Assembly (NCBI GenBank): GCA_977020255.1
Contig: CDROCS010000253.1
Span: 1,116,001 to 1,180,000 of the forward strand
Length of the DNA: 64,000 bases
DNA from: Obrimoposthia wandeli
Taxonomy: Eukaryota
Direction: 5' to 3'
Positions 6,766 through 32,075 of the stretch are shown here, one piece after another. The translations under genes were made by a program, and so were the position numbers. Below the pieces are notes generated by a model. The model searched no databases. It saw only the letters and a list, made by a program, of their open reading frames with translations, and was not told the origin of the DNA. The first letter of the stretch is position 1; each line of letters opens with the position of its first letter.

Positions 6766-8940
6766 ATGGACGTTTCAGAATTACTCGACTCTCTTAATGA
6801 TAAACAGCGTGATGTTGTTGCTGCTCCAAAACAAAATATGCTTATTTTGGCTGGCGCAGGTAGTGGTAAAACGCGAGTATTAGTACAACGTATCGCATGG
6901 CTAATGCAAGTTGAGGGAGTCTCTTCGCACAGTATTTTGGCGGTAACCTTTACCAATAAAGCCGCAGCAGAGATGCGTGCTCGTGTAGAACAAGTGACGA
7001 ATGGTAATACTCACGGTATGTGGATAGGCACTTTTCATGGCTTGGCACATCGTTTATTAAGAATGCACTTCCAAGAAGCTAATTTACCACAAAGCTTTCA
7101 AGTGCTTGATAGTGATGATCAGCTTCGTTTAATTAAACGAATTGTTCGTTCATTAGAGCTTGATGAGAAAAAATGGCCACCGAAGCAATTTGTTTGGTAC
7201 ATCAATGGTAAAAAAGATGAAGGCCTTCGTCCTCAACATATTGATGCCCAGTTCGATCCCACAGAAGAGCTGTTTGTTAAAGTTTATAAAGCCTACCAAG
7301 AAACCTGTGATCGAGCGGGATTAGTTGATTTTGCCGAATTGTTATTGCGAGCCCATGAATTGTGGTTGAAAAATCCAGCATTACTCGAACATTATCAACA
7401 GCGTTTTGGTCATATATTAGTAGATGAGTTTCAAGATACTAATGCGATTCAATATGCATGGCTTACTATGCTGGGTAAGGCGCGTAGTAAGGTTATGATT
7501 GTTGGTGATGATGATCAATCAATCTATGGCTGGCGTGGTGCAAAAATTGAAAATATTGAACGTTTTTTAAAAGAATATGATGAGGCGAAAACCATTCGCC
7601 TTGAGCAAAATTATCGCTCAACTGCTAATATTTTGAAATCAGCTAACCAGCTAATTTGCAACAATACTAACCGTATGGGTAAAGAGCTGTGGACTGATGG
7701 CGAAGCGGGCGAAAAAATCTCAATTTATACTGCTTTTAATGAAATTGATGAAGCACGCTTTATCGCCGGCCGCATAAAACAATGGCGTGACGATGGCGGT
7801 AAACTTGATGAAGTAGCGATATTATATCGCTCAAATGCACAATCACGTTTACTTGAAGAAGCGTTACTGCAAGGGCAATTGCCGTATCGTATTTATGGTG
7901 GTCAACGATTCTTCGAACGACAAGAAATCAAAGATGCGCTTGCTTACATGCGTCTTATTAATAATCGTGATGATGATGCAGCCTTTGAGCGTGTTATCAA
8001 TACACCAACTCGTGGCATTGGTAATCAAACCTTATCACTGGTCAGAGACGCAGCTCGGGGTATGGAAGTAACCATGTGGCAAGCTTGCCAGCAGATGTTA
8101 CAAGCAGAGCAATTGAAGGGTAGGGGCGCTAAAACGATTACAGCGTTTATTCAACTTATTGAACAATTAGAAGATGATACCGCTAATTTAGATTTAGACC
8201 AGCAGGCGAACTTTATTATCAGCCATAGTGGTTTAAAGGCTATGTATCAGGCAGAAAAAGGTGAACGTGCTGCACAGCGTATAGAAAACTTAAATGAGCT
8301 AGTCACAGCATGTCAAACCTTTGAAAGCGATCCTGAATTAGCAGAAGAACAAACTCCGTTAACAGCATTTTTAACCCATGCGGCATTAGAGTCAGGTGAA
8401 TCACAAGCTGATGAGTTTGAAGCGGCGGTTCAGTTAATGACAATGCACTCAGCTAAAGGCTTAGAGTTTCCTTTGGTTTTTATTGCGGGTCTCGAAGAAG
8501 GTATGTTCCCCTCGCAACAATCGGTTGAAGAAATTGGCCGCTTAGAAGAAGAACGCCGCTTGTGTTATGTCGGTATGACAAGAGCAATGCGCAAGCTCTA
8601 TTTATGTCACGCGGAAAGCCGTCGTTTATATGGACAAGAAAAATTCCATAAAGCGAGTCGTTTTTTACGTGAATTACCTGAAGATTGTATCGAAGAAATT
8701 CGCATGCAGTCGCAAGTAAAGCGACCCAGTAAAGTTGGAAAGTTCTCCAATACCTTCACACTTGAAACCTTTGAAAATACAGGTTTTAAGTTGGGACAGC
8801 AGGTTAAACATGCTAAGTTTGGTGAAGGTGTGGTGCTTAACTATGAAGGCAGCGGTGCTCAATCACGTATTCAGGTAAATTTTGCCGATGTCGGTAGCAA
8901 GTGGCTCGTGGTGGAATACGCCAATTTACAAGCGGTTTAA
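6766..8940 (+). CDS. uvrD: DNA helicase II
   Basis: AGAGSGKT, VTFTNKAA, DEFQDTN, GDDDQSIY, HSAKGLEF and EEERRLCYV motifs; 724 aa. Confidence 0.98.
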   Translation: MDVSELLDSLNDKQRDVVAAPKQNMLILAGAGSGKTRVLVQRIAWLMQVEGVSSHSILAVTFTNKAAAEMRARVEQVTNGNTHGMWIGTFHGLAHRLLRMHFQEANLPQSFQVLDSDDQLRLIKRIVRSLELDEKKWPPKQFVWYINGKKDEGLRPQHIDAQFDPTEELFVKVYKAYQETCDRAGLVDFAELLLRAHELWLKNPALLEHYQQRFGHILVDEFQDTNAIQYAWLTMLGKARSKVMIVGDDDQSIYGWRGAKIENIERFLKEYDEAKTIRLEQNYRSTANILKSANQLICNNTNRMGKELWTDGEAGEKISIYTAFNEIDEARFIAGRIKQWRDDGGKLDEVAILYRSNAQSRLLEEALLQGQLPYRIYGGQRFFERQEIKDALAYMRLINNRDDDAAFERVINTPTRGIGNQTLSLVRDAARGMEVTMWQACQQMLQAEQLKGRGAKTITAFIQLIEQLEDDTANLDLDQQANFIISHSGLKAMYQAEKGERAAQRIENLNELVTACQTFESDPELAEEQTPLTAFLTHAALESGESQADEFEAAVQLMTMHSAKGLEFPLVFIAGLEEGMFPSQQSVEEIGRLEEERRLCYVGMTRAMRKLYLCHAESRRLYGQEKFHKASRFLRELPEDCIEEIRMQSQVKRPSKVGKFSNTFTLETFENTGFKLGQQVKHAKFGEGVVLNYEGSGAQSRIQVNFADVGSKWLVVEYANLQAV

Positions 8941-8975
8941 CGATTTCGCGGTTTGACATAGTACTCGTTTATTTG

Positions 8976-9041
8976 GATACGTTTTTTTAGCACCATCGAA
9001 GAAGCGCTCTGCAACAAGCATCTTCAAGAGGAACGGGTATA
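8976..9041. repeat. Family B mini-element remnant (left boundary uncertain)
   Basis: Right end GCATCTTCAAGAGGAACGGGTATA matches 61316-61339 at 20/24 positions. Confidence 0.5.
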
Positions 9042-9090: not shown

Positions 9091-10353
9091 GTGATGTCTC
9101 AGAGATTATTAGTAGTAGAAGACAGTAAACCGATAGCGACCGTTATCAAACAGATAGCTCGGTCGTTAAAGTTTGATGTGGTGGTAGCCACTGATTTAGC
9201 CCAAGTGGAAAATATCCTATCATCGGATACTGATTTTTTTGCTGCGACCATTGATTACGCCTTACCTGATGCGCTAGATGGTGAAGCCATCGCTTGTGTA
9301 TTATCTCATGGTATTCCTAGCATAGTGATGACAGGGAGAATGGATGATGAAACTCGGCAAAAAATATTATCACAGCCGGTCATTGATTATATTCCAAAAG
9401 AAAATAGTCAAGCCTTCCTTTATTTAAAGCGTGTTTTACATTGGCAACAAACCAATAATAAAAATACCATTTTGGTGGTTGATGACTCATCTTCGGCGCG
9501 AAACCATATTGTCGAGTTATTAAAACGCCGTAATTTCAATGTGATTACCGCTAATAATGGTGTGCAGGCTTTAGAAAAACTGGCTCAGCATAAAAATATT
9601 AAAATGGTCATCACCGATTTAGAAATGCCGGCAATGGACGGTATTGAGCTGACCAATGAAATTCGTCGTGTTTATACCCGTGAGCAATTAGCCGTAATAG
9701 GTATTTCAGGCGCGAGTAATGGTATTCATTCAGCACGCTTTATAAAAAATGGCGCCGATGACTTTTTACGTAAACCTTTTTGCCCTGAAGAATTCTATTG
9801 TCGTATTACTCAAAATATCGAAAGTTTGAATAACATTGCTAAAATTCAGCATGCAGCCAACACAGATTATTTAACCGATCTAGCTAATCGACGTGCTTTT
9901 TTCCGCAGTGCCGAGTCTCGCATCAAAGAATATATCAATAAAAAAGTCCCTTACTGTTTAGCTATGATAGATATCGACTTCTTTAAGAAGGTAAATGATA
10001 CCTACGGCCATGATATTGGCGATCAAGTATTAAAAGTGATTGCTCTTTATATGCGGAAACACTTTGGTGCAGGACTTACCGCTCGTTTGGGTGGTGAGGA
10101 GTTTGCAGTACTGTTACATGGTTTAGATGCAGATAATTTGTATAATAAATTAGATGACTTTAGACGAGAAATTTCTGTGTCAACTATTCCTGCAGGCGAT
10201 GCCTCTATCTCAATAACCTTGAGTGTAGGGGTAGTCTTTGATAGCCAAGATGAGTTCTCTAAGCAAATGAATGAAGCAGATAATGCTTTATACGCAGCAA
10301 AAGAAAATGGTCGTAATCAGGTAGTCGTCTTTGGGGCAGAATTAGAAGATTAA
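9091..10353 (+). CDS. Response-regulator diguanylate cyclase (REC-REC-GGDEF)
   Basis: Two receiver-like segments (VVED..., VVDDS...ITDLEMP...KP) and ARLGGEEF. Confidence 0.92.
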   Translation: MMSQRLLVVEDSKPIATVIKQIARSLKFDVVVATDLAQVENILSSDTDFFAATIDYALPDALDGEAIACVLSHGIPSIVMTGRMDDETRQKILSQPVIDYIPKENSQAFLYLKRVLHWQQTNNKNTILVVDDSSSARNHIVELLKRRNFNVITANNGVQALEKLAQHKNIKMVITDLEMPAMDGIELTNEIRRVYTREQLAVIGISGASNGIHSARFIKNGADDFLRKPFCPEEFYCRITQNIESLNNIAKIQHAANTDYLTDLANRRAFFRSAESRIKEYINKKVPYCLAMIDIDFFKKVNDTYGHDIGDQVLKVIALYMRKHFGAGLTARLGGEEFAVLLHGLDADNLYNKLDDFRREISVSTIPAGDASISITLSVGVVFDSQDEFSKQMNEADNALYAAKENGRNQVVVFGAELED

Positions 10354-11544: not shown

Positions 11545-13428
11545 GTGATATTATCCATAAGAAAATTAGTCGACACCTTCTTGAATTCTTCCGTTGCCAA
11601 TGACCAAAATAGCACTCAAATCAGTACAGAAACTAGTACCGAAGAGAGTGCATTATTGCTCGATACTTTAAAGCACTATTTTGGCTATGATAGCTTCCGT
11701 GAGGGGCAAGCTAAAATTATTAACAGCTTGTTGCAAGGGCAAGATTCATTGGTGTTAATGCCTACGGGTGGCGGTAAATCATTATGTTATCAGTTGCCTG
11801 CGGTACTATTACCCGGTGTTACTATCGTTATTTCCCCATTGATTGCGTTAATGAAAGACCAAGTAGATGGCTTAACTAGGCAGGGTATATCAGCTGCCTT
11901 TATTAATTCAAGTTTAGAGCAAAGCGAAATCAGTGATATTTTTTCCCGGTTAGGACGAGGTGAAATTAAATTACTTTATGTTGCCCCAGAACGCCTAACT
12001 AATTATTACTTCTTACAAAGCTTGAGCCAACTGCCACTAAGCTTATTTGCGATTGATGAAGCACACTGTATCTCCCAGTGGGGTCATGACTTCAGACCCG
12101 CCTATACCAAACTGCAATGTTTAAAGCAAAATTTCCCCACCGTACCGGTTATGGCATTAACAGCTACGGCTGATGTTACTACCCGTAAAGATATTTTGAA
12201 CCAACTTGCGCTGCCAAACCCTTATATTCATCTTGATAGCTTTGACCGACCTAATATTCGTTTTACTTTAGCGCCTAAATATAATGGCGAAAAACAATTG
12301 TTGGGCTATATCAGAAAGAAGGGTGAAGATAGCGGCATTATTTATTGTAACAGTCGTTGGCAGGTAGAAAAACTGGCCAAGTACTTAGCCGCTAGCGGCA
12401 TCAATTGTGCTGCTTACCATGCGGGACTAGAAAACGAAATTCGTTCGCTAGTACAAGAGGGTTTTACCAAAGATAATATTCAAATAGTGATTGCTACCGT
12501 TGCTTTTGGTTTAGGTATCAATAAACCTAATGTGCGTTATGTTATACATTTTGAGCCACCTCGTACTTTAGAATCTTATTATCAAGAAATTGGCCGGGCA
12601 GGTCGTGATGGCTTAAACGCAGAAGCCTTATTCTTGGTTGATGAGAAAGATGTTAATCGTATTAAGAAGCGCATTAGTGAAGGCGATAATCCACAGCGCG
12701 TGAATGTTGAAATGCAGCGTTTTGCTGCCATGGATGCCTTTATTGATGCACAAACCTGTCGTCGGCAGGTAGTACTGAATTATTTTGCCGAATATACTGA
12801 AAAAGGCTGTGGCAATTGCGATATTTGCTTAGACCCGCCAAGTCAGTTTGATGGCACGATTGCAGCGCAAAAAGTATTGTCATGTGTGTATCGTATTAAA
12901 CAGCAGGGTGATATTAATCATGTTATTGCTGTTTTACGCGGTGAACTGACCGATAAAATTAAACAATTAGCGCACGATAAAGTTTCTACCTTCGGTATTG
13001 GTAAAGGTAAAACCGCAGGTTACTGGTTCTCTATTATTGGACAGTTAATTCATTTAGGTTATTTACAGCAAGATATCGAACAACAATCTATTTTATGTCT
13101 AACACAAGCATCGGGCGTAGTATTAAAAGCACAAGAGCCTTTGATGTTAGCTAGCCCACGTCTGCAAAAAGCCAGCTACTGGCAGGAAAAAAGCCCGAAG
13201 AAAAGTTATGACCGGGTGTTATTCGCGAAACTACGTGAGTTACGTAAAGCGATTGCCGATGGTGAAGATATTGCACCTTTCATTGTTTTTAATGATGCAA
13301 CCTTATCTGAACTGGCACGGGTACAGCCGAAAACATCGCGTGAAATGCTTAGTATTAGTGGTATCGGAGATGTGAAGTTATCCCGTTATGGACAACCCTT
13401 TCTAGCGTTAATCAAAGAGCACAAATAA
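11545..13428 (+). CDS. recQ: ATP-dependent DNA helicase RecQ (start may be slightly downstream)
   Basis: [25 protein letters not shown], Zn-binding CRR...CGNCDIC, RQC and C-terminal HRDC segments. Confidence 0.95.
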
Positions 13429-13754: not shown

Positions 13755-15917
13755 TTACTTAGGTAATGCAGTAAAGCCCATGTTGAACAAGGTAAAGGCA
13801 TAGATGTCAGCGTACTGTTCAATAGTTTTAGAAACAGGCGTACCGGCACCATGACCCGCATTGGTTTCAATACGAATCAATGTTGGTGCGTTACCTGCTT
13901 GTTTAGCTTGTAACTCAGCAGCAAACTTAAATGAATGTGCTGGCACAACACGGTCATCATGATCACCTGTAGTTACCATAGTTGCTGGATAGCTAACACC
14001 GGCTTTAACATTATGAACTGGAGAATAGCCCTTTAAGTAAGTGAACATTTCTTCACTTTGCTCAGCAGTACCGTAATCGTAAGCCCAACCAGCACCCGCA
14101 GTGAAGGTGTGGTATCTAAGCATGTCTAATACACCAACAGCGGGTAAGGCAACTTGCATAAGATCAGGGCGTTGAGTCATAACAGCCCCTACGAGTAAAC
14201 CACCGTTAGAACCGCCATTAATCGCTAAGTAGTCACTAGAGGTATAATCTTGCTTAATTAAGTATTCACCGGCAGCAATAAAGTCATCAAAAACATTTTG
14301 TTTATCTAACTGAGTACCAGCTTTATGCCATTTTTTACCGTATTCACCGCCGCCACGTAAGTTAGCAACAGCATAAATACCTCCTTGCTCTAACCATACC
14401 GCACGGGAAACACTAAACTTTGGTGTTAAGCTAATATTGAAACCGCCGTAACCATATAAAATAGTTGGGTTTTTACCATTAAGTTCAATACCTTTTTTAT
14501 AGGTAATGATCATCGGTACTTTGGTGCCATCTTTTGAAGGATAGAATACTTGCTTTGATTCATAAGCATCACTATCGAATTTAGCGCCTGACTTAAGGTA
14601 AACTTCACTATTACCTTTATCTATGTTGTAGCTATAGATAGTACCTGGCGTTTTGTAGTTGCTAAATGAGTAATATAAAGTACTTTCGTCTTTATCGCCT
14701 TCTAAGGCTGAAGCACTACCAACACCCGGTAAATTGATTTCACGTATTTGTTTACCTTGATAATCATATTGATAAACTTTAGAAATGGCATCAACCATGT
14801 ACTCAGTAAAGAAGAAACCGCCACCGGTTGAAGCGCTTAATACGTAATCGGTTTCTGCAATAAAGTCAGTCCAATTTTTACTTGCTGGCGCTTTAGCATT
14901 GACCGTAACAATTTTCTTATTTGGCGCGCCTAAATTAGTCACTAAGAATAACTTGTCGCCGTCATTTTCAAGGACATGAGTATCTGCATCAAAGTTATCA
15001 GTAATGGTGACTAATGGACTATTTGGTTTGGTTAAATCTTTAAGATAAAGATCATTACCTGACGTTGAAACAGCACCTGAGATAAGTAAGAAGCGGTTAT
15101 CTTCTGTAACTGTGCCACCAACATAACGACGTTTTTGTTCAGCCGTGTTACCAAAAACAATTTTATCGTCTTTTTGTGGTTGACCTAATACGTGGTAATA
15201 AAGTTTATGTTGGTCAGTCTTGGCCGATAACTCACTGCCTTTTGGCTTGTCGTAACTTGAGTAGTAAAACCCTTCATTTTTAAACCAAGAAATGCCCGAG
15301 AATTTGACATCAACAAGTGGTGTTTCTAGTACTTTCTTTGTCTCTACATCGATAATGATGATTTTACGCCAATCACTACCCCCTTCAGAAATAGCATAAG
15401 CGGCTATTGAACCATCTTTTGAAAAGCTTAATTGCCCCATTGAGGTAGTGCCATCTACACTAAAAGTGTTTGGATCTAAAAATACTTCAGCAGTATCACC
15501 GTCTTTTTGACGATAAACGACATACTGATTTTGTAGGCCATCATTTTTGTAAAAATAGGAATAGTTACCTTTTTTAAAAGGGGCACCTACTTTTTCGTAG
15601 TTCCATAACTCTGCCAAACGAGACTTAAGTTGTCCACGGTACGGAATTTGTGACAAGTAATCGAAAGTGACCTTGTTTTCCGCTTCAACCCAAGCGCCAG
15701 TTTCTTCACTGCGATCATCTTCTAACCAACGGTAAGGATCTGCCACATCAGTACCAAAGAAATTGTCAACCACATCACCTTTTGCTGTCACAGGGTAACT
15801 AATTTTTTGTTGGGCTGAAGCAACAGGCTCTGATGTTTGTTCAACACTGTTACCAGTACAACCGGCTAATACGCTAGTGACCAAGATACTGGTCATGAAA
15901 AGGCTTTTGTTCTTCAT
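13755..15917 (-). CDS. Prolyl oligopeptidase (S9A), lipoprotein; true start MKNKS at 15917
   Basis: DPYRWLE, GGSNGG nucleophile, DDRV and HG motifs; lipobox LAGC. The upstream 41 codons of the ORF-track call largely come from a MITE. Confidence 0.95.
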
Positions 15918-25472: not shown

Positions 25473-26138
25473 TTAGTCGTCATTTAACAATTCAGTTAAA
25501 CAGGCCATTTGTTCTGTTAATGAAGTCATTTTTTGTTCTAATTCAGTTACTCTTTGCGCGAGTTGAGTTTGCTCTGCTGAAAAAGCTACTTCAGTTTGAA
25601 TCATTACTGGTTGAGCTAAACTCGTTTCATCAAAATCTGAGAGTAAATGCACATAACGAGAGTCTCGCTTACCTGGCTCACGTTCAAGTTTTCTGATCAA
25701 GGTTTGGCCGTTTAAGTCCTGTAATTGATTTAACGTGTTTTCAACTTCACTCACATCAGCAAAGTTAGCCAGTCTATTAGTACGTGTTCTTAATTCACCA
25801 GGCGTTTGCGGGCCTCTTAAAAATAAAACACAAATAACGGCTCGTTGTTGAGACGTAAACTTCAAATTGCCAAATTCGGTATCACAAAAACGATGAAAAT
25901 ATTTATTAACGCGAGTCGATGCTTTTTGGTCAACCATTAGTTGATTCATTTGCACCAGTTCATCAACTAGGTTTTGCACGTCACTTTCTGATAGTGACAT
26001 TACCGGATCACGATTACTCTTTTGATTACAGCCAGTTGTAATACTGTTTAAAGATAGAGGATATTGCTCAGGCGTGGTGGTTTCTTTTTCAAGCATTACG
26101 CCAATAATACGGCATTGTTCTGCGGAAAGTGTAATCAT
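25473..26138 (-). CDS. yceH: YceH/DUF480 family protein
   Basis: EKETTTPEQYPLSLN, CNQKSNRDPVM, LRGPQTPGELRTR and EPGKRDSRY motifs. Confidence 0.92.
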   Translation of the reverse strand: MITLSAEQCRIIGVMLEKETTTPEQYPLSLNSITTGCNQKSNRDPVMSLSESDVQNLVDELVQMNQLMVDQKASTRVNKYFHRFCDTEFGNLKFTSQQRAVICVLFLRGPQTPGELRTRTNRLANFADVSEVENTLNQLQDLNGQTLIRKLEREPGKRDSRYVHLLSDFDETSLAQPVMIQTEVAFSAEQTQLAQRVTELEQKMTSLTEQMACLTELLNDD

Positions 26139-26222
26139 CTTGAAGGTACCTTTATAAAATAGCTAATGATGTTATAGCAAGCTATATGCCTCATTACTAT
26201 GTTGACGTGTTTGATTGCTCAC

Positions 26223-26263
26223 AAAAAAGCCATAGCTAAGGCATTACTTAGCTATGGCCTTTT
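26223..26263 (-). terminator. Intrinsic terminator, probably the ancestral yicC terminator
   Basis: 12-bp perfect stem GCCATAGCTAAG / CTTAGCTATGGC with T6 on the minus strand, just past the displaced yicC-end copy. Confidence 0.75.
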
Positions 26264-26377
26264 AAGGATTAAACGCGCTTGAAGCTTATTTGATATTCGC
26301 GTTCTGAACTCGAACTAGATAATAAATATTTAATTTTTAAATGATTTAAAAATACAATTTCTATTGGGAACACATTT

Positions 26378-26456
26378 AATAATCCTATTTAAATAGGATT
26401 ATTGCCAAGTTACAATTTATTATGTATATTAATCCTATTAAGATAGGATTAATATA
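26378..26456 (+). promoter_or_regulatory. hipBA promoter (TTGCCA-17-TATATT) with two palindromic operators
   Basis: Perfect 26-bp palindrome at 26378-26403; 14-4-14 inverted repeat at 26425-26456; shared core AATCCTAT-N4-ATAGGATT. Confidence 0.8.
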
Positions 26457-26458
26457 TT

Positions 26459-26746
26459 ATGGCAAAACGAGTTATTGCGACAAAAGCACCAAACATAGAT
26501 CTCCCCATAAACATGATACGACTGGGGGAGTTTGTTCGCTTTAAAAGAACCTCCTTAGATATAACAATTGAAAATGCTGCTAGTCTTTGTGGTGTATCTA
26601 AACAAGCCCTCAATAACATTGAACTAGGTGTTGATTCGGTAAAGCTAGTAACGCTATTTAAAGTCATTAACCAATTAGGCATATCACTATGGCTTGAGAG
26701 CCAGAGTGCTGAATGCGCTGAGGAGATAGATGATGAGTGGCTCTAA
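26459..26746 (+). CDS. HipB-like XRE HTH antitoxin
   Basis: LGEFVRFKR..LDITIENAASLCGVSKQALNNIELG HTH; overlaps the hipA start. Confidence 0.85.
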   Translation: MAKRVIATKAPNIDLPINMIRLGEFVRFKRTSLDITIENAASLCGVSKQALNNIELGVDSVKLVTLFKVINQLGISLWLESQSAECAEEIDDEWL

Positions 26747-27580
26747 TCCATTTCCTTCAATATCTATATTCAGCCAATCCGAAAAAGTAGGTACATTAGA
26801 ATTTATTGAACCTGGAAAATGCACTTTTGCATATGATGACTTTTGGGTAAAGAATAGATTTCCAATTTCCCCGTGCATTCCGTTTGATGGCGAACCTTCA
26901 CCCTTAACTGTCATTAACTTTTTAAGAAATCTTTTTCCAGAGGGTGATGCTTTTGACCTTTTGTTAACAAGCCAAAATCTATCGAAACAAAATTTATATG
27001 CCATTCTCATTACAATAGGCATCGATACTGCTGGTATTTTGTCTTTTTCTGATATTGAGTATCAAGAAGAAGAAACAATACTTCGTGAGGTTAAAGAGCA
27101 AGAGTTAATTCAAAAACTATCGTCAAATGATATTCAAGAACTGGTTACTTGGGATGGTAAATATCGTTTATCGGTCGCAGGGGTTCAAAATAAACTGAAT
27201 GTATTTATAGATACTGATGGTCGGTTTATGCTGGCAAACGGTAAATATTCGAGTACACATATTCTAAAATTTGCATCAAAAAAATATGAAAGCATTGTGA
27301 TCAATGAGCTCTTTTGCATGAGGTTAGCTAGAGAGGTTAAGTTAAACGTTGCTAATGTTTCATATAGAAAATTTGGAAAACACGATACCTTAATTGTTGA
27401 ACGATTCGATAGAAAAATCACACATGAAACAGTTAAAAAGCGTCATATTATAGATGCATGCCAAGCCTTAGATTTACCCCCTGAGTATAAATATGAACAT
27501 AACTTTGGCTCTGGTGAGCATGTTGCGTAATACCATTCAAGCCGATCACTTTTTTGTCTTCCAGTAGAACTCCGTAAAAT

Positions 27581-28345
27581 CTAACTTGAGTGATCGGCAT
27601 CAGTCAAGGAATTTAGTTTTTTTCGCATCGATTCGCCTTTTAATTCTAACTTAATTGACCCGTGAACAAGCCGATCTAGGATCGCATCCGCATGAGTGGA
27701 TTCTCCGATCATTTCATACCAATTTGCTATGGGTAATTGGCTCGCAATTAAGGTTGATTTTGTATCATATCTGGCATCAATTAATTCAAGTAAATCACTG
27801 CGTTGTTGAGCCGTTAATGGCTCTAATCCCCAATCATCTAAGATCAGTAAACTGGCAGAGCTAAGTTTGTTGATTAGTTTGCGATAACTGCCATCAGCTT
27901 GCGCCAAAAACATTTTTTCTAATAGCTCTTTGAGTCTGAAATAATAAACGCTATTCCCTTGTTGACAGTGGTTTTGCCCAAGAGCACAAGCAAGGTAAGT
28001 TTTGCCACAACCCGTTGCTCCCGTGATCAAAATGTTTTGGTGAAGGCGAAGCCATTCCCCTTGCGCCAATGAACGGATCTGAGTTTTATCTAGTTGTCGT
28101 GCTGCGCCATAGTTGAGTTGAGCAAGCGTACCGCCAACTCTGAACTTTGCTTGTCGAGTTAGTCGGTCAATTTTACGCTGGTCACGCTTAGTTATTTCAT
28201 GCTCAAGCAATAAACTTAGCCGCTCTTCGAAGCTTTGTTCAACGTATAGATTAGGTTGTTCATATTGCTGCAATAGTGCGTCACGTATACCGCTTAGCTT
28301 TAAATTACTTAACTGGTTTGTGACTTGTTGATTTATGTTTTGCAT
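27581..28345 (-). CDS. istB: IS21 helper ATPase
   Basis: Walker A GATGCGKT, Walker B LLILDDWG, DAILDRLVH. Confidence 0.96.
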   Translation of the reverse strand: MQNINQQVTNQLSNLKLSGIRDALLQQYEQPNLYVEQSFEERLSLLLEHEITKRDQRKIDRLTRQAKFRVGGTLAQLNYGAARQLDKTQIRSLAQGEWLRLHQNILITGATGCGKTYLACALGQNHCQQGNSVYYFRLKELLEKMFLAQADGSYRKLINKLSSASLLILDDWGLEPLTAQQRSDLLELIDARYDTKSTLIASQLPIANWYEMIGESTHADAILDRLVHGSIKLELKGESMRKKLNSLTDADHSS

Positions 28346-28373
28346 AGACTTCCCTTTAGTTTGTTAATTTTCA

Positions 28374-29936
28374 TTAATGGTAATAGTTGTTGCCACGGAT
28401 ATTTTGATGGTCAATTTCTTGTAGTAAATCACCTTGAGCTTCTGGCAAGGCTTGTTTATCCAAGCCTTTTTCTAAGATGTTTTTTACTTGTTTTACTCGC
28501 GTGACACCTGTGGCTAAGGCGCGATGACAGGCCGCTTCAAGCCGTTGGTCAGTAAACTTCTTGCCTAGACTTAACAATCCCATACAAGCACGGTAGCTTT
28601 GCTCTGGGTGCTTTTTAGCTTGCATCAATTGCATGACAAATTGCTCAGTTGATGCGCCGAATTTACTTGCCCAATTCTCAAATCGCTGCGGCGTCCATTG
28701 CTGTTGCTTTTGATGAGCGATAGGCATGTGTAGCTCAAGTGTTGTGTGGGCACCTTCTCTGTGCGATCTAGGGTGAACAGCCACTTGTATGCCTTGATGG
28801 TAAAGTGTTATCAATTGCCCTGAGGCATGAGCTTCAAGCTTTTGTTTGATTAAGGTATGTGGCACTGAGTAGTAGTGCTTTTCAATTTCCACATGATAAT
28901 CAATATGCACGCTCACCTGTTTTACTAAGGTATAGCTGTAAGCCTGTGCGGGTAACGATTTGAGTGCAGGTCTGTCGATAGCGTCAAACTGACTGAGCCT
29001 TGAGCCAGGATGCTTTTTCATTTTCCTCTGATTTAAATCGACCAGTAATTCTTGTATTTTTAAGTTTAATTGACGCAAGCTAAAAAAGGTTTCATTACGA
29101 AGGCGTGCCATTATCCAACGTTCAACAATTTGAACACCCACTTCGGCCTTCGCTTTATCCTTGGGCTTATAAGGTCTCGCTGGCACAATAACGGTATCGT
29201 AATGTGTAGCGAGTTGTTGGTAAGTTGGGTTTAAATCAGGCTCATAACGACAGGGTTTTGTGACGGCACTTTTAAGGTTGTCAGGAATTACCAGCTCTGG
29301 CACACCGCCAAGAAACTCAAAACAACGGGCATGACTCATTACCCAATCTTCGAGTTTCTGGCTGTAAGTCGCCTCAGCATAGGTAGAATTTGATGCACCC
29401 ATGACCGCGACAAACACTTGTGCAGTACGGCATTCGCCTGTACTTCCATCAACAATATTCATGGTTGGGCCACAGTAGTCTACAAACAGTTTTTCACCTG
29501 CTTTATGGTTTTGTCGCATCGAGGGCTTTTGGCATTTAAGCCATGCCTTGTACTGGCGGCAGAAGTGGGTATAGCTGTAAAATCCTTCCGCATGTCGCTC
29601 TTTATATTCCTCCCAAAGCAATAACAACGTCATGGTTTTTGGTCGTAGTTCTTGTTGAACCAATGACCAGTCAGGGATCGTAAAGCCTTTTAATCTCGGC
29701 TTTGTTTTGAAGAACGCTTGTTGCAGGGAGTGATCATCCCACTTTGCATCGAGCGGCCAACAAGTGATGCCTAGCTCTGCTGATTTAGAGGCATATTTAG
29801 ATACGATTGAAGGTGAAACAGATAAGCTTTTTGCTATCTGACGATGACTGAGTTTACAGCCGTATTTTAGTCTTAAAATCTCTTTAAGTTTACGCATTGA
29901 AATAGGTGCCGTTGGCATGGTCATTCTCATCATCAA
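28374..29936 (-). CDS. istA: IS21 transposase (start probably 29924 or 29918)
   Basis: HKAGEKLFVDY, VIPDNLKSAV and PKDKAKAEVGV (DDE). Confidence 0.96.
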   Translation of the reverse strand: MMMRMTMPTAPISMRKLKEILRLKYGCKLSHRQIAKSLSVSPSIVSKYASKSAELGITCWPLDAKWDDHSLQQAFFKTKPRLKGFTIPDWSLVQQELRPKTMTLLLLWEEYKERHAEGFYSYTHFCRQYKAWLKCQKPSMRQNHKAGEKLFVDYCGPTMNIVDGSTGECRTAQVFVAVMGASNSTYAEATYSQKLEDWVMSHARCFEFLGGVPELVIPDNLKSAVTKPCRYEPDLNPTYQQLATHYDTVIVPARPYKPKDKAKAEVGVQIVERWIMARLRNETFFSLRQLNLKIQELLVDLNQRKMKKHPGSRLSQFDAIDRPALKSLPAQAYSYTLVKQVSVHIDYHVEIEKHYYSVPHTLIKQKLEAHASGQLITLYHQGIQVAVHPRSHREGAHTTLELHMPIAHQKQQQWTPQRFENWASKFGASTEQFVMQLMQAKKHPEQSYRACMGLLSLGKKFTDQRLEAACHRALATGVTRVKQVKNILEKGLDKQALPEAQGDLLQEIDHQNIRGNNYYH

Positions 29937-31117
29937 AAATGAAAAGAATAACGGTTAAAAACACCTACTGGCTAGACAAAAGAGTATGAATATTGAACGG
30001 TACTATTCAAGCCGATCACTCAATACCATTTTGACCGAAAAGTGATCGGCATCGATGGTATTGAGTGATCGCGATGAATGGTATTAGGTGATCGCGATGC
30101 ATGAGAATATGCACATGTACAGCATATTCGTGACGGAGTGAGTTTTAATAAATTATTTGAATTCGCAAAAACGTGCTCAGTTCCAGCCATCGTTATTCAA
30201 AACCTAATCGATTGGTGCATATTCAACTTAATTATTGGAAATAGTGATGCCCACGGTAAAAATACTAGCTTTTTTGTCGGTTCTAGCGGAATTACTATTA
30301 CGCCTTTCTATGATCTTGTTTCTGTCACCTATGAAGCATCCAAAAATAAAAAAATAGATACGGCCTTAGCAATGGCAATTGGAGATAATTTTGATATTAC
30401 TAGTATCACTGCATACGACTTATTGTCGCTTGCTGATGAAGCAGGTATATCATTTAGTTTTTTGAAAAAAAGAGCGGCTAATTTATCAACTCTTATAATG
30501 AAAAAAATAGATAACTTAAACTTTGATGAGTTTGAATTGGATAAACCAAGCCTATTCATTATTGAAGAATTAAAAGAGCTGGTGGCTAAACAAGCTAATT
30601 CATTATTTGATGAGACAAGTCTAATGGATATGGTTGCTACAGAGGCTTTTTAGAGATTACGACTCCAATGTGGAGCCTGTATTGCCCACTCAACTTTTTT
30701 TGATAATATTTTGATTAAATGAATACACCACAACTGACCTTGAAAGCGACTGTGTCATGATACTTAGCTTCAAGCCTAAGCTAAATAAACCTGTATATTT
30801 TTGGTGCGAAGCATGGAAAAGGAATAATATTGATATTTGGCGTGATTTTGGTGAAACACGTCTAACATTTCTAGCATATTTATTAATTGGTGTAGCAAGC
30901 TCTACTTTTCCTGAACTTCTTTTAAATAGAGAAGGCCAAAGTCGAAGTTAATATTATTGAGTTGTTACCAAACAGGTCACCATTTCGTATTTAAAAAGTA
31001 AGGTTTAATGACGGTAGAAGAGGTCTATAGAGTACTAATGACGCCATAACAGCCTGATATCTCAGGCTTATGACGGTTCAAGACGTTTTTTAACTGTTTG
31101 AAAAGGCAGGTGAATGC

Positions 31118-31981
31118 CTACTCTATATTCGCGATCTGCTCACGCATTTGTTCAATTAATACTTTTAACTCCACAGCACTTGCCGTGATGTCAGTATTAA
31201 TTGATTTTGAGCCTAGGGTATTTGCTTCTCGGTTAAACTCTTGCATCATGAAATCTAAACGACGACCTTGTGCGCCACCTTTATTCAAGATTTTCTTCGT
31301 TTCAGTAACATGGCTGTTTAAACGGTCAAGTTCTTCGGCAACATCCATTTTTTGTGCTAATAACACTAACTCTTGCTCAACACGACCTGAGTCTAAATCA
31401 ATTTTAGCATCGGTGAATTTTTCAATGATGCGATTACGCTGCCAAGCAATGACATCCGGCATATGCGCAGCTACTTTATCGGCTTCGTCGGCTATTGCAT
31501 CAAGGCGTTGTTCAATCATCACCTTAAGGTTTTCACCTTCGCTGGCGCGAGCGGCAATAAAGTCTATTAGCGCTTGGTCAAAAGCAGCGAGTAATTCAGC
31601 TTGAATTGCCGACATATCGCTTTCAGGTGCTTCCATCACACCAGGCCAGCGCATTACTTCTAAAGGATTTACTTTACTGTTTAGTGTTTGCTCATTAATC
31701 CAGTTAGCATGCTGAATAAGTTGTAGAGCCAAACTTTCATTAAGTGCTAATTCGTTTTTGTTGGCAGGGTTGGCATTAAAACGTAAGTGACATTCTACTT
31801 TTCCGCGATTAAGTTGTTTACGAAAACGCTCACGTAAAACAGGCTCTATGCCACGAAATTGTTCTGGTAAACGGAAATAGGTCTCTAGAAAGCGTTGATT
31901 AACTGAGCGGATTTCCCAAACGGCGTTGCCCCAGTCGCCTTTAATTTCAATGCGAGAAAATGCGGTCATGCTGTAGATCAT
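31118..31981 (-). CDS. yicC: YicC/YloC family endoribonuclease
   Basis: MIYSMTAF, WEIRSVNQRFLE, GRRLDFMMQEFNREANTLGSKS, EQMREQIANIE; 287 aa from 31981. Confidence 0.96.
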   Translation of the reverse strand: MIYSMTAFSRIEIKGDWGNAVWEIRSVNQRFLETYFRLPEQFRGIEPVLRERFRKQLNRGKVECHLRFNANPANKNELALNESLALQLIQHANWINEQTLNSKVNPLEVMRWPGVMEAPESDMSAIQAELLAAFDQALIDFIAARASEGENLKVMIEQRLDAIADEADKVAAHMPDVIAWQRNRIIEKFTDAKIDLDSGRVEQELVLLAQKMDVAEELDRLNSHVTETKKILNKGGAQGRRLDFMMQEFNREANTLGSKSINTDITASAVELKVLIEQMREQIANIE

Positions 31982-32075
31982 AAGTGTTACCTGAAAGTTT
32001 GCTAAAATAGGGTACTCAAATATAGCCGACACCCCTGTCAATCCGCTGTTCCGAAATGAGTAATTGAAACGAGCG

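Follow-up and report, generated by a model that had tools for sequence, protein, structure and literature searches.

A probable decayed, integrase-less island remnant with an interrupted hipBA module at the 3′ end of yicC in a Colwellia chromosome

The DNA analysed here is a stretch of 64,000 nucleotides (hereafter the window; contig CDROCS010000253.1, or C253, of assembly GCA_977020255.1, filed under Obrimoposthia wandeli) in which an islet of 4856 bp (26286-31141) lies between the gene yicC and its original terminator. yicC is encoded on the minus strand (31118-32041) and its product carries the Pfam domains YicC-like_N and YicC-like_C. The last 21 bp of the gene, stop codon included, constitute the core of the left attachment site (attL; 31118-31138, minus strand); this gene end has been rebuilt, with the part after GCGAATAT supplied by the island. 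The core of the right attachment site (attR; 26286-26306, minus strand) is found 4.8 kb downstream of the end of yicC and is composed of the P side of the island (TTCAGAAC), the shared GCGAATAT and the displaced original end of yicC (CAAATAA). It is followed by the original yicC terminator, now apart from its gene (26223-26265, minus strand; 17-bp stem, −26.3 kcal/mol, z −6.5), beyond which lies yceH/DUF480 (25473-26138). Between the two cores, the islet contains a hipBA toxin–antitoxin module, an insertion sequence (IS) of the IS21 family placed inside hipA, a gene fragment (orf64) and the arms of the former attachment site of the element (attP). Subtracting the IS together with one of the two copies of the target duplication leaves 2261 bp. 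The reading that we hold with good confidence is that it represents a decayed, integrase-less remnant, of the cis-mobilizable element (CIME) type, of an island that was inserted in the 3′ end of yicC by a P4-type integrase.

The copy at 26286-26306 matches the terminal 21-mer of yicC at 16 of 21 positions. The 14-mer CAGANCGCGAATAT is common to both ends and occurs exactly twice in the 64 kb of the window, compared with no occurrence in 100 shuffles. A 24-mer version of the repeat matches at 17 of 24 positions, which chance alone produces in some control loci, and the repeat alone was for this reason rejected as proof of insertion. Because it is weak evidence by itself, synteny was used to decide, on a set of 80 fetched related yicC loci (designated by L numbers). 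Seven loci of the Colwellia type (L009, L010, L011, L015, L022, L026 and L029) present an empty site, in which yicC is followed by approximately 150 bp with one strong terminator, the same that is preserved at 26223-26265, and then by yceH/DUF480. In L009, the nearest relative, the empty site is 86% identical to the window over 108 nt (26306 to 26200), from within the end of yicC through the terminator, and its sequence is GCGAATATCGAATAA followed by the terminator, exactly the reading that the first-pass annotation had predicted.

A second line of evidence came from the comparison of the window with L009 and with L028, a metagenome-assembled genome (MAG) of the Alteromonadaceae whose yicC is only 75% identical at the nucleotide level. 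Over the last 320 nt of yicC before the 21-mer, the window is 93-94% identical to L009 and 75-80% identical to L028, whereas the first 160 nt after the 21-mer are 93-94% identical to L028 and unrelated to L009. The breakpoint falls on the 21-mer and no donor-like (L028) tract is present inside yicC, which points to site-specific recombination, and not to homologous replacement, as the origin of the switch. In the attR copies of L012, L039, L050, L085 and the window, the island side starts with TTCAGA, whereas yicC itself has GAGCAGA. This common prefix supports the view that the attP sites are homologous. Taken together, the imperfect direct repeats on both sides, the empty sites of seven relatives and the partner switch at the 21-mer demonstrate the integration step, with the exchange of the yicC end and of its terminator, and bear out the earlier proposal that an insertion had rebuilt the gene end and displaced the original one.

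These observations have to be weighed against a different account, according to which the interval between yicC and yceH simply varies, as a generic hotspot, and hipBA got there either by vertical descent or by homologous recombination across the core genes on its two sides. Close relatives of the window hipBA, of the same lineage, do occupy the yicC-yceH interval of several Colwelliaceae (L105, L150, L097/L151), with different neighbours and no integrase, and other relatives (L013, L014, L021) have ordinary-looking genes in the interval. However, such an account does not agree with the duplicated yicC end and its P-side prefix, which is typical of attR in other islands, with the partner switch at the 21-mer in the absence of any L028-like tract inside yicC, or with the clean empty sites of the closest relatives. 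Besides, hipB-hipA of the window and of L150 are 85-89% identical in nucleotide sequence, compared with 73-75% for yicC and the adjacent GMC oxidoreductase gene. Since hipBA is closer to its L150 counterpart than the flanking core genes are, vertical inheritance was rejected, and the module appears to be horizontal and not ancestral. The account is already largely refuted and we consider it very improbable. The first-pass annotation had staked its insertion claim on two expectations, namely that relatives without hipBA join yicC to the terminator and that hipBA is not vertically inherited, and both of them held.

Copies of the yicC end were also seen in other arrangements. L022 carries one with 20 of 24 positions matching (14995-15018), located 6 kb downstream of yicC, past yceH and mscS, and its yicC-yceH junction looks empty. 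In L096 (11380-12263), sequences resembling the 3′ end of yicC flank yceH on both sides (minus strand, starting at 12263 and 11408); hipA-hipB adjoins the second of them and there is no yicC within the locus. In L042 (8898-12503), which comes from an Aliivibrio MAG, a module of 3.6 kb with HlyD-like, MFS-like and TetR-like genes is enclosed by a duplicated yicC 3′ end; the repeated segment exceeds 50 nt, far more than the 21-bp attachment site.

The type of recombinase that would have inserted the island is indicated by the relatives. A P4-type tyrosine integrase with the domains Arm-DNA-bind_3, Phage_int_M and Phage_integrase is found directly after yicC in 15 of the 80 loci, starting 150-300 bp after the gene, and islands that bear the integrase gene (int) show tandem repeats of the GGTGAC type just upstream of it. 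Tandem repeats are also present 70-95 bp upstream of the attR core in L012, which has int, and in L019, L039, L050 and L085, which do not. Published island lineages at the 3′ end of yicC comprise MGIVflInd1, MGIVmi1 and SGI1-like elements (PMC5704250, PMC8409611), and the same site is targeted by GI21, GISpuPO1, GISspANA3 and GIPspSM9913 (PMC8978831). These reports agree with the statement of the first-pass annotation that yicC is a known island target, and the integrases of the 15 loci, together with the partner switch at the 21-mer, with its proposal of a tyrosine-integrase origin.

Islets without int between yicC repeats are not restricted to the window. Colwellia asteriadis (L019) has one of 4.9 kb encoding HerA and an OLD/Gabija-like ATPase, and a Thalassotalea MAG (L039, 8892-15084) one of 6.2 kb with the same 22-nt double repeat in both arms, P and P′. 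A Vibrio islet of 2.9 kb (L085, 8895-11815) contains hipBA and a second toxin-antitoxin pair; its P′ arm has four arm repeats and its P arm two. L039 and L085 are better candidates than the window copy for helper-dependent (CIME-like) mobility. The islet of an Alteromonas sp. (L050, 8868-11068), of 2.2 kb, consists only of hipB-hipA in the orientation of the window; its HipA is only distantly related to that of the window (approximately 35% over a short stretch), which suggests a convergent reduction to a toxin-antitoxin-only islet. The cargo of yicC islands in relatives corresponds mostly to anti-phage defence, such as Olokun OloA/OloB in L012, the HerA and ATPase genes of L019, SoFic in L150 and a type IV methyl-directed restriction enzyme in the island of L028. 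Fic/AbiEi-like proteins were also noticed among the yicC-interval cargo of the loci surveyed (L012, L019, L028, L105 and L150). A cargo rich in defence genes fits the current view of such hotspots.

The hipBA module lies next to attR. Its promoter region (26380-26451, plus strand) contains two 22-bp operator palindromes (26380-26401 and 26430-26451), and the best sigma-70-like site, TTGCCA-17-TATATT (26402-26430), sits between them. The palindromes are conserved in six related hipBA loci, where three to four copies are present compared with two in the window. hipB (26459-26746, plus strand), which encodes an antitoxin/repressor of the Pfam family HTH_3, is 96% identical in amino acid sequence to hipB of the metagenome contig L095, and its end overlaps the start of hipA. 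The toxin gene is split into a 5′ part (26730-27523, plus strand; Couple_hipA and the first half of HipA_C in Pfam) and a 3′ part (30119-30653, plus strand; positions 99-193 of the HipA_C profile). The module thus combines HipA kinase domains, distributed over two pieces, with an adjacent helix-turn-helix antitoxin, and the reading frame of hipA is interrupted by the IS. Both pieces meet at the same residue, because the 5′ part extends to residue 272 of the intact HipA of L024 and the 3′ part starts from it. The motifs VAGVQNK, in the 5′ piece, and GNSDAHGKN and YDLVS, in the 3′ piece, correspond to the kinase motifs of Escherichia coli HipA; with motifs present in both pieces, the gene looks intact apart from the IS. 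When HipA was searched and compared as its two separate pieces, close relatives (79-97% amino acid identity) were found in genomes and metagenomes of Colwelliaceae and Alteromonadaceae, the closest proteins being P0001 (97%) and P0002 (90%). HipA of the window shares only 27-43% identity with its counterparts in L024, L050 and L085, which indicates that different hipBA lineages were recruited to yicC islands repeatedly. HipAB of GI21 adjoins attR and prevents the loss of the island after excision (PMC8978831). By analogy, the original role of the window hipBA was likely island stabilisation.

The IS that interrupts hipA is an ISShfr5-like element of 2590 bp (27524-30113, minus strand) with the Pfam domains IstB_IS21, rve and Mu-transpos_C_2. 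It shows the features expected of the IS21 family: the DDE transposase gene istA (28374-29936), the gene of the AAA+ helper istB (27581-28345), terminal repeats and a short target duplication, here the 5-bp CATGT (27519-27523 and 30114-30118). It is 90% identical at the nucleotide level to ISShfr5-type copies on plasmids of Pseudoalteromonas and Alteromonas, and a search of the assembly (G000) found only one full copy. The boundaries were placed with the help of public runs, examined as Logan contigs and not as raw reads. Run X19, probably the source sample, covers the whole stretch at a depth of approximately 40, and run X20, from another study and under another organism label, contains the same islet and the same IS junctions at 99.9-100% identity. 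Loose ends fall at 30113, and a joint links 27518 to 30114 sharing 5 nt. This joint is found on one X19 contig (depth approximately 10 compared with approximately 40) that lacks the IS and whose shorter side is only 25 nt; it suggests that an IS-free hipA allele exists and that the insertion is polymorphic in the population. An X19 contig also presents 22 extra letters at position 27528 of the window, in the left terminal-repeat region of the IS, which may correspond to a repeat collapsed in the assembly. With the IS inside hipA, only the HipB repressor can still be made from the module. Addiction is then dead in the IS-bearing allele and cannot be what keeps the islet there.

The two arms of the former attP differ in their content. 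The P′ arm occupies the 160 bp next to the new end of yicC (30958-31117, minus strand), with a small hairpin and a T-run after the new stop codon and then a second hairpin; it folds with z −4.85 and is 94% identical at the nucleotide level to L028 and 78% to L152. At its end lie the tandem repeats GGTGAC and GGTAAC, 12 bp apart (30964-30981), the sole such pair in the islet, which no int follows. Because the same tandem repeats precede int in int-bearing islands, they are read as putative arm-type integrase sites. Next to them is orf64 (30757-30951, plus strand), 64 codons that represent the C-terminal 28%, approximately, of a 224-amino-acid open reading frame (ORF) which is intact in L028. 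The fragment is 92% identical to L028 in amino acid sequence (tblastn, 9132-9311) and matches the last 60 codons of the ORF at 95% nucleotide identity over 198 nt. It had no match in Pfam or PADLOC, and the comparison with L028 indicates a deletion scar. On the yceH side, the residual P arm (26307-26379, minus strand; approximately 70 bp) is A+T-rich, and homology to the nearest hipBA copy (L095) ends at approximately 26376. Arm-type repeats were searched for in 26307-26379 and none was found, so that the attP arms together hold the tandem pair of P′ alone, as putative sites recognised by their sequence. No gene for an integrase, excisionase or other recombination directionality factor, relaxase or transfer function was detected in 26286-31141, either next to attL or elsewhere, in a list of ORFs of at least 40 amino acids compared with Pfam, in agreement with the first-pass description of the islet as devoid of integrase and excisionase. 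Apart from hipB, hipA, orf64 and the IS genes, the remaining ORFs in that list are overlapping frames without family support, and a Rfam scan of 25900-31500 at E ≤ 0.1 gave nothing.

The first-pass annotation had considered both a decayed island kept by toxin-antitoxin addiction and a minimal satellite mobilised in trans. The evidence favours the decayed island, because the gene fragment is truncated, the arm repeats of the yceH side are missing and, among the best candidates scored, the chromosome yielded no cognate integrase. That part of the proposal stands, whereas addiction as the force that retains the islet falls with the IS inside hipA. The signs of decay are orf64, the two hipB operators compared with three to four in relatives, the P arm devoid of repeats and the interruption of hipA. 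The sequence of events would have been as follows. The island entered the 21-bp attachment site in the 3′ end of yicC, probably through a P4-type tyrosine integrase, and this step, which is demonstrated, replaced the last codons and the terminator of the gene by island-borne ones and moved the original end and terminator 4.8 kb away. Afterwards, as we infer from relatives, internal deletions would have brought the orf64 fragment up against hipBA, next to attR, and eliminated the sites for integrase binding from the arm on the yceH side. Until an ISShfr5-like IS21 element inserted cleanly into hipA, the toxin-antitoxin pair probably served to stabilise the island through post-segregational killing, as shown for GI21. 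The islet would now be an inert passenger, which could move only with the integrase and excisionase of a related island, and even then poorly.

Several points weigh against decay in place as the whole explanation. The P′ arm without int is common to the window, L028 and L152 at 78-94% nucleotide identity, and the hosts that share this arrangement have diverged much further (yicC approximately 75%); L028 and L152 share a further spacer of 90 bp. An int-less P′ arm so similar across more diverged hosts indicates that int was apparently already absent from its canonical place when the lineage of the window acquired the element, and such a spread after the loss of int hints at mobilisation in trans or in cis and not at pure in situ decay. 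The L028 contig ends 2.2 kb into the island, and an integrase elsewhere in that island is possible. The loss of repeats from the P arm is in turn suggested by the analogy of other islands. The best integrase match on C253 is 27% identical and contains a stop codon, and a query with the L024-type integrase found nothing; this search scores the best candidates only, and other contigs of the assembly could share the cell.

The islet could instead be a still functional, minimal hipBA satellite flanked by attachment sites, which would obtain integrase, excisionase (Int/Xis) and conjugation from a related yicC island or integrative and conjugative element present in the same cell, with the helper acting in trans or through tandem accretion. 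Both core sites are indeed intact, the acquired DNA begins precisely at the core, and three int-less elements from three hosts have kept the P′ arm, arm-type repeats included, at 78-94%. Int-less islets between yicC repeats recur (L019, L039, L050 and L085), with arm repeats in both arms in L039 and L085; in the window, however, the yceH-side arm has none, and the truncated gene fragment and the lost operators reveal deletions. L152 provides a junction resembling attP (P-like side, core and P′ arm; 8650-9010, equivalent to approximately 15450-15810 of contig C5 of genome G050) beside hipA-hipB. This junction has no yicC upstream and genes of the TonB/ExbBD type on the other side, and may represent a tandem array or an integration at a secondary site; on another contig of the same genome, yicC is followed by an integrase with internal stops. 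Against a satellite, no cognate integrase was found on C253 and the islet has no mob gene or recognisable origin of transfer (oriT). Nor do the public runs help this explanation: their single contig with an empty site represents the allele of another strain and not an excision product. It comes from X20, where a joint connects 26262 with 31122; it was rejected as a product of excision because its 25 intervening letters differ from the attR flank of the window, and it is the native empty allele of a co-occurring strain. No attP junction was seen in the contigs of the public runs, although contigs cannot exclude rare forms. We therefore regard a functional satellite as unlikely.

A broader form of the same idea places the window islet together with L028 and L152 in one lineage of int-less toxin-antitoxin or defence cassettes, flanked by attachment sites, that spreads among Alteromonadales hosts through the Int/Xis of co-resident yicC islands. 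We find this doubtful as well. If it were true, such cassettes would constitute a third-tier parasite at the yicC hotspot, since the helper islands themselves borrow conjugation machinery, and the mini-islets formed only by toxin-antitoxin genes (L050 and L085) would be a recurrent minimal form. Decay of an integrase island remains the preferred explanation for the window copy, which itself looks crippled, although helpers may at one time have mobilised the lineage to which it belongs.

With respect to the host, YicC of the window shares 96-98% identity with its counterparts in Colwellia psychrerythraea ND2E and an uncultured Colwellia MAG, and the assembly that contains C253 (1.35 Gb, 6912 contigs) includes several further bacterial yicC genes. 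The window is therefore a Colwellia chromosome within a host-associated or mixed assembly. The islet has a G+C content of 33-35%, compared with 37-43% for its flanks and 42-45% for the IS. Another bacterium of the assembly (G000, contig C5705, 1-2154; L006, L089 and L091) has a yicC whose product is 51% identical to that of the window; a P4-type integrase interrupted by several stop codons comes immediately after it, which makes this locus an independent case, the second in the sample, of a yicC island in decay.

The islet offers a clean and fully delimited case of the ageing of a hotspot, in which the recombinase is lost before the attachment sites and the addiction module, and the toxin is then disarmed by an IS. 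It also has consequences for annotation: yicC is intact but chimeric in its last codons, hipA is a pseudogene and the 4.9 kb are an island remnant and not part of the core genome. Int-less islets between yicC repeats are found in Colwellia, Thalassotalea, Alteromonas and Vibrio, some of them with complete arm repeats and many with defence or toxin-antitoxin cargo. In marine Gammaproteobacteria, the yicC hotspot may consequently be another setting for CIME-like hitch-hiking, known mainly from streptococci.

Among known systems, the islands GI21, GISpuPO1, GISspANA3 and GIPspSM9913 of Shewanella and Pseudoalteromonas (PMC8978831) resemble the islet in their target, the 3′ end of yicC, in repeats of approximately 21 bp and in a HipA/HipB pair next to attR, reported to stabilise the island; hipBA is likewise on the attR side in the window. 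Their restriction or defence cargo can be likened to that of the relatives of the window. In contrast, these islands measure at least 20 kb and have integrase and excisionase next to attL, neither of which is present in the islet. The gene order is hipA-hipB in this group, with GI21 compared by its description, and hipB-hipA in the window, where hipA is disrupted by the IS. The MGIVflInd1-type islands of Vibrio, mobilised by SXT/R391, and MGIVmi1, mobilised by IncC, use the same yicC site and are also small and helper-dependent, and some mobilizable genomic islands (MGIs) of the yicC type carry toxin-antitoxin pairs, MGIVchUSA1 being listed with two (PMC5704250). However, MGIVflInd1 and MGIVmi1 have Int and RdfM genes of their own as well as MobI or an oriT mimic, and nothing of this kind is present or recognisable in the islet; in the MGIVflInd1 type, the oriT resembles that of SXT/R391 and is accompanied by SetCD-responsive promoters. 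As in type II HipBA systems, the gene of the HTH_3 antitoxin overlaps a kinase gene with Couple_hipA and HipA_C, and operators bracket the promoter. Unlike in them, the toxin gene is interrupted by an IS and there is no functional addiction module in the IS-bearing allele. CIMEs, which can leave or be transferred after the tandem integration of a related element, were defined in ICE systems of Firmicutes; the islet, which has the composition described in the published definition (PMC5704250) and derives from a larger integrative element, is CIME-like by its sequence, with one arm that looks truncated, and the attP-like junction of its relative L152 recalls the tandem or accreted arrangement of such elements. 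In conclusion, the islet would derive from the tyrosine-integrase islands specific for yicC and, because it lacks the integrase and excisionase that define membership among them, it is best filed as a CIME-type derivative.

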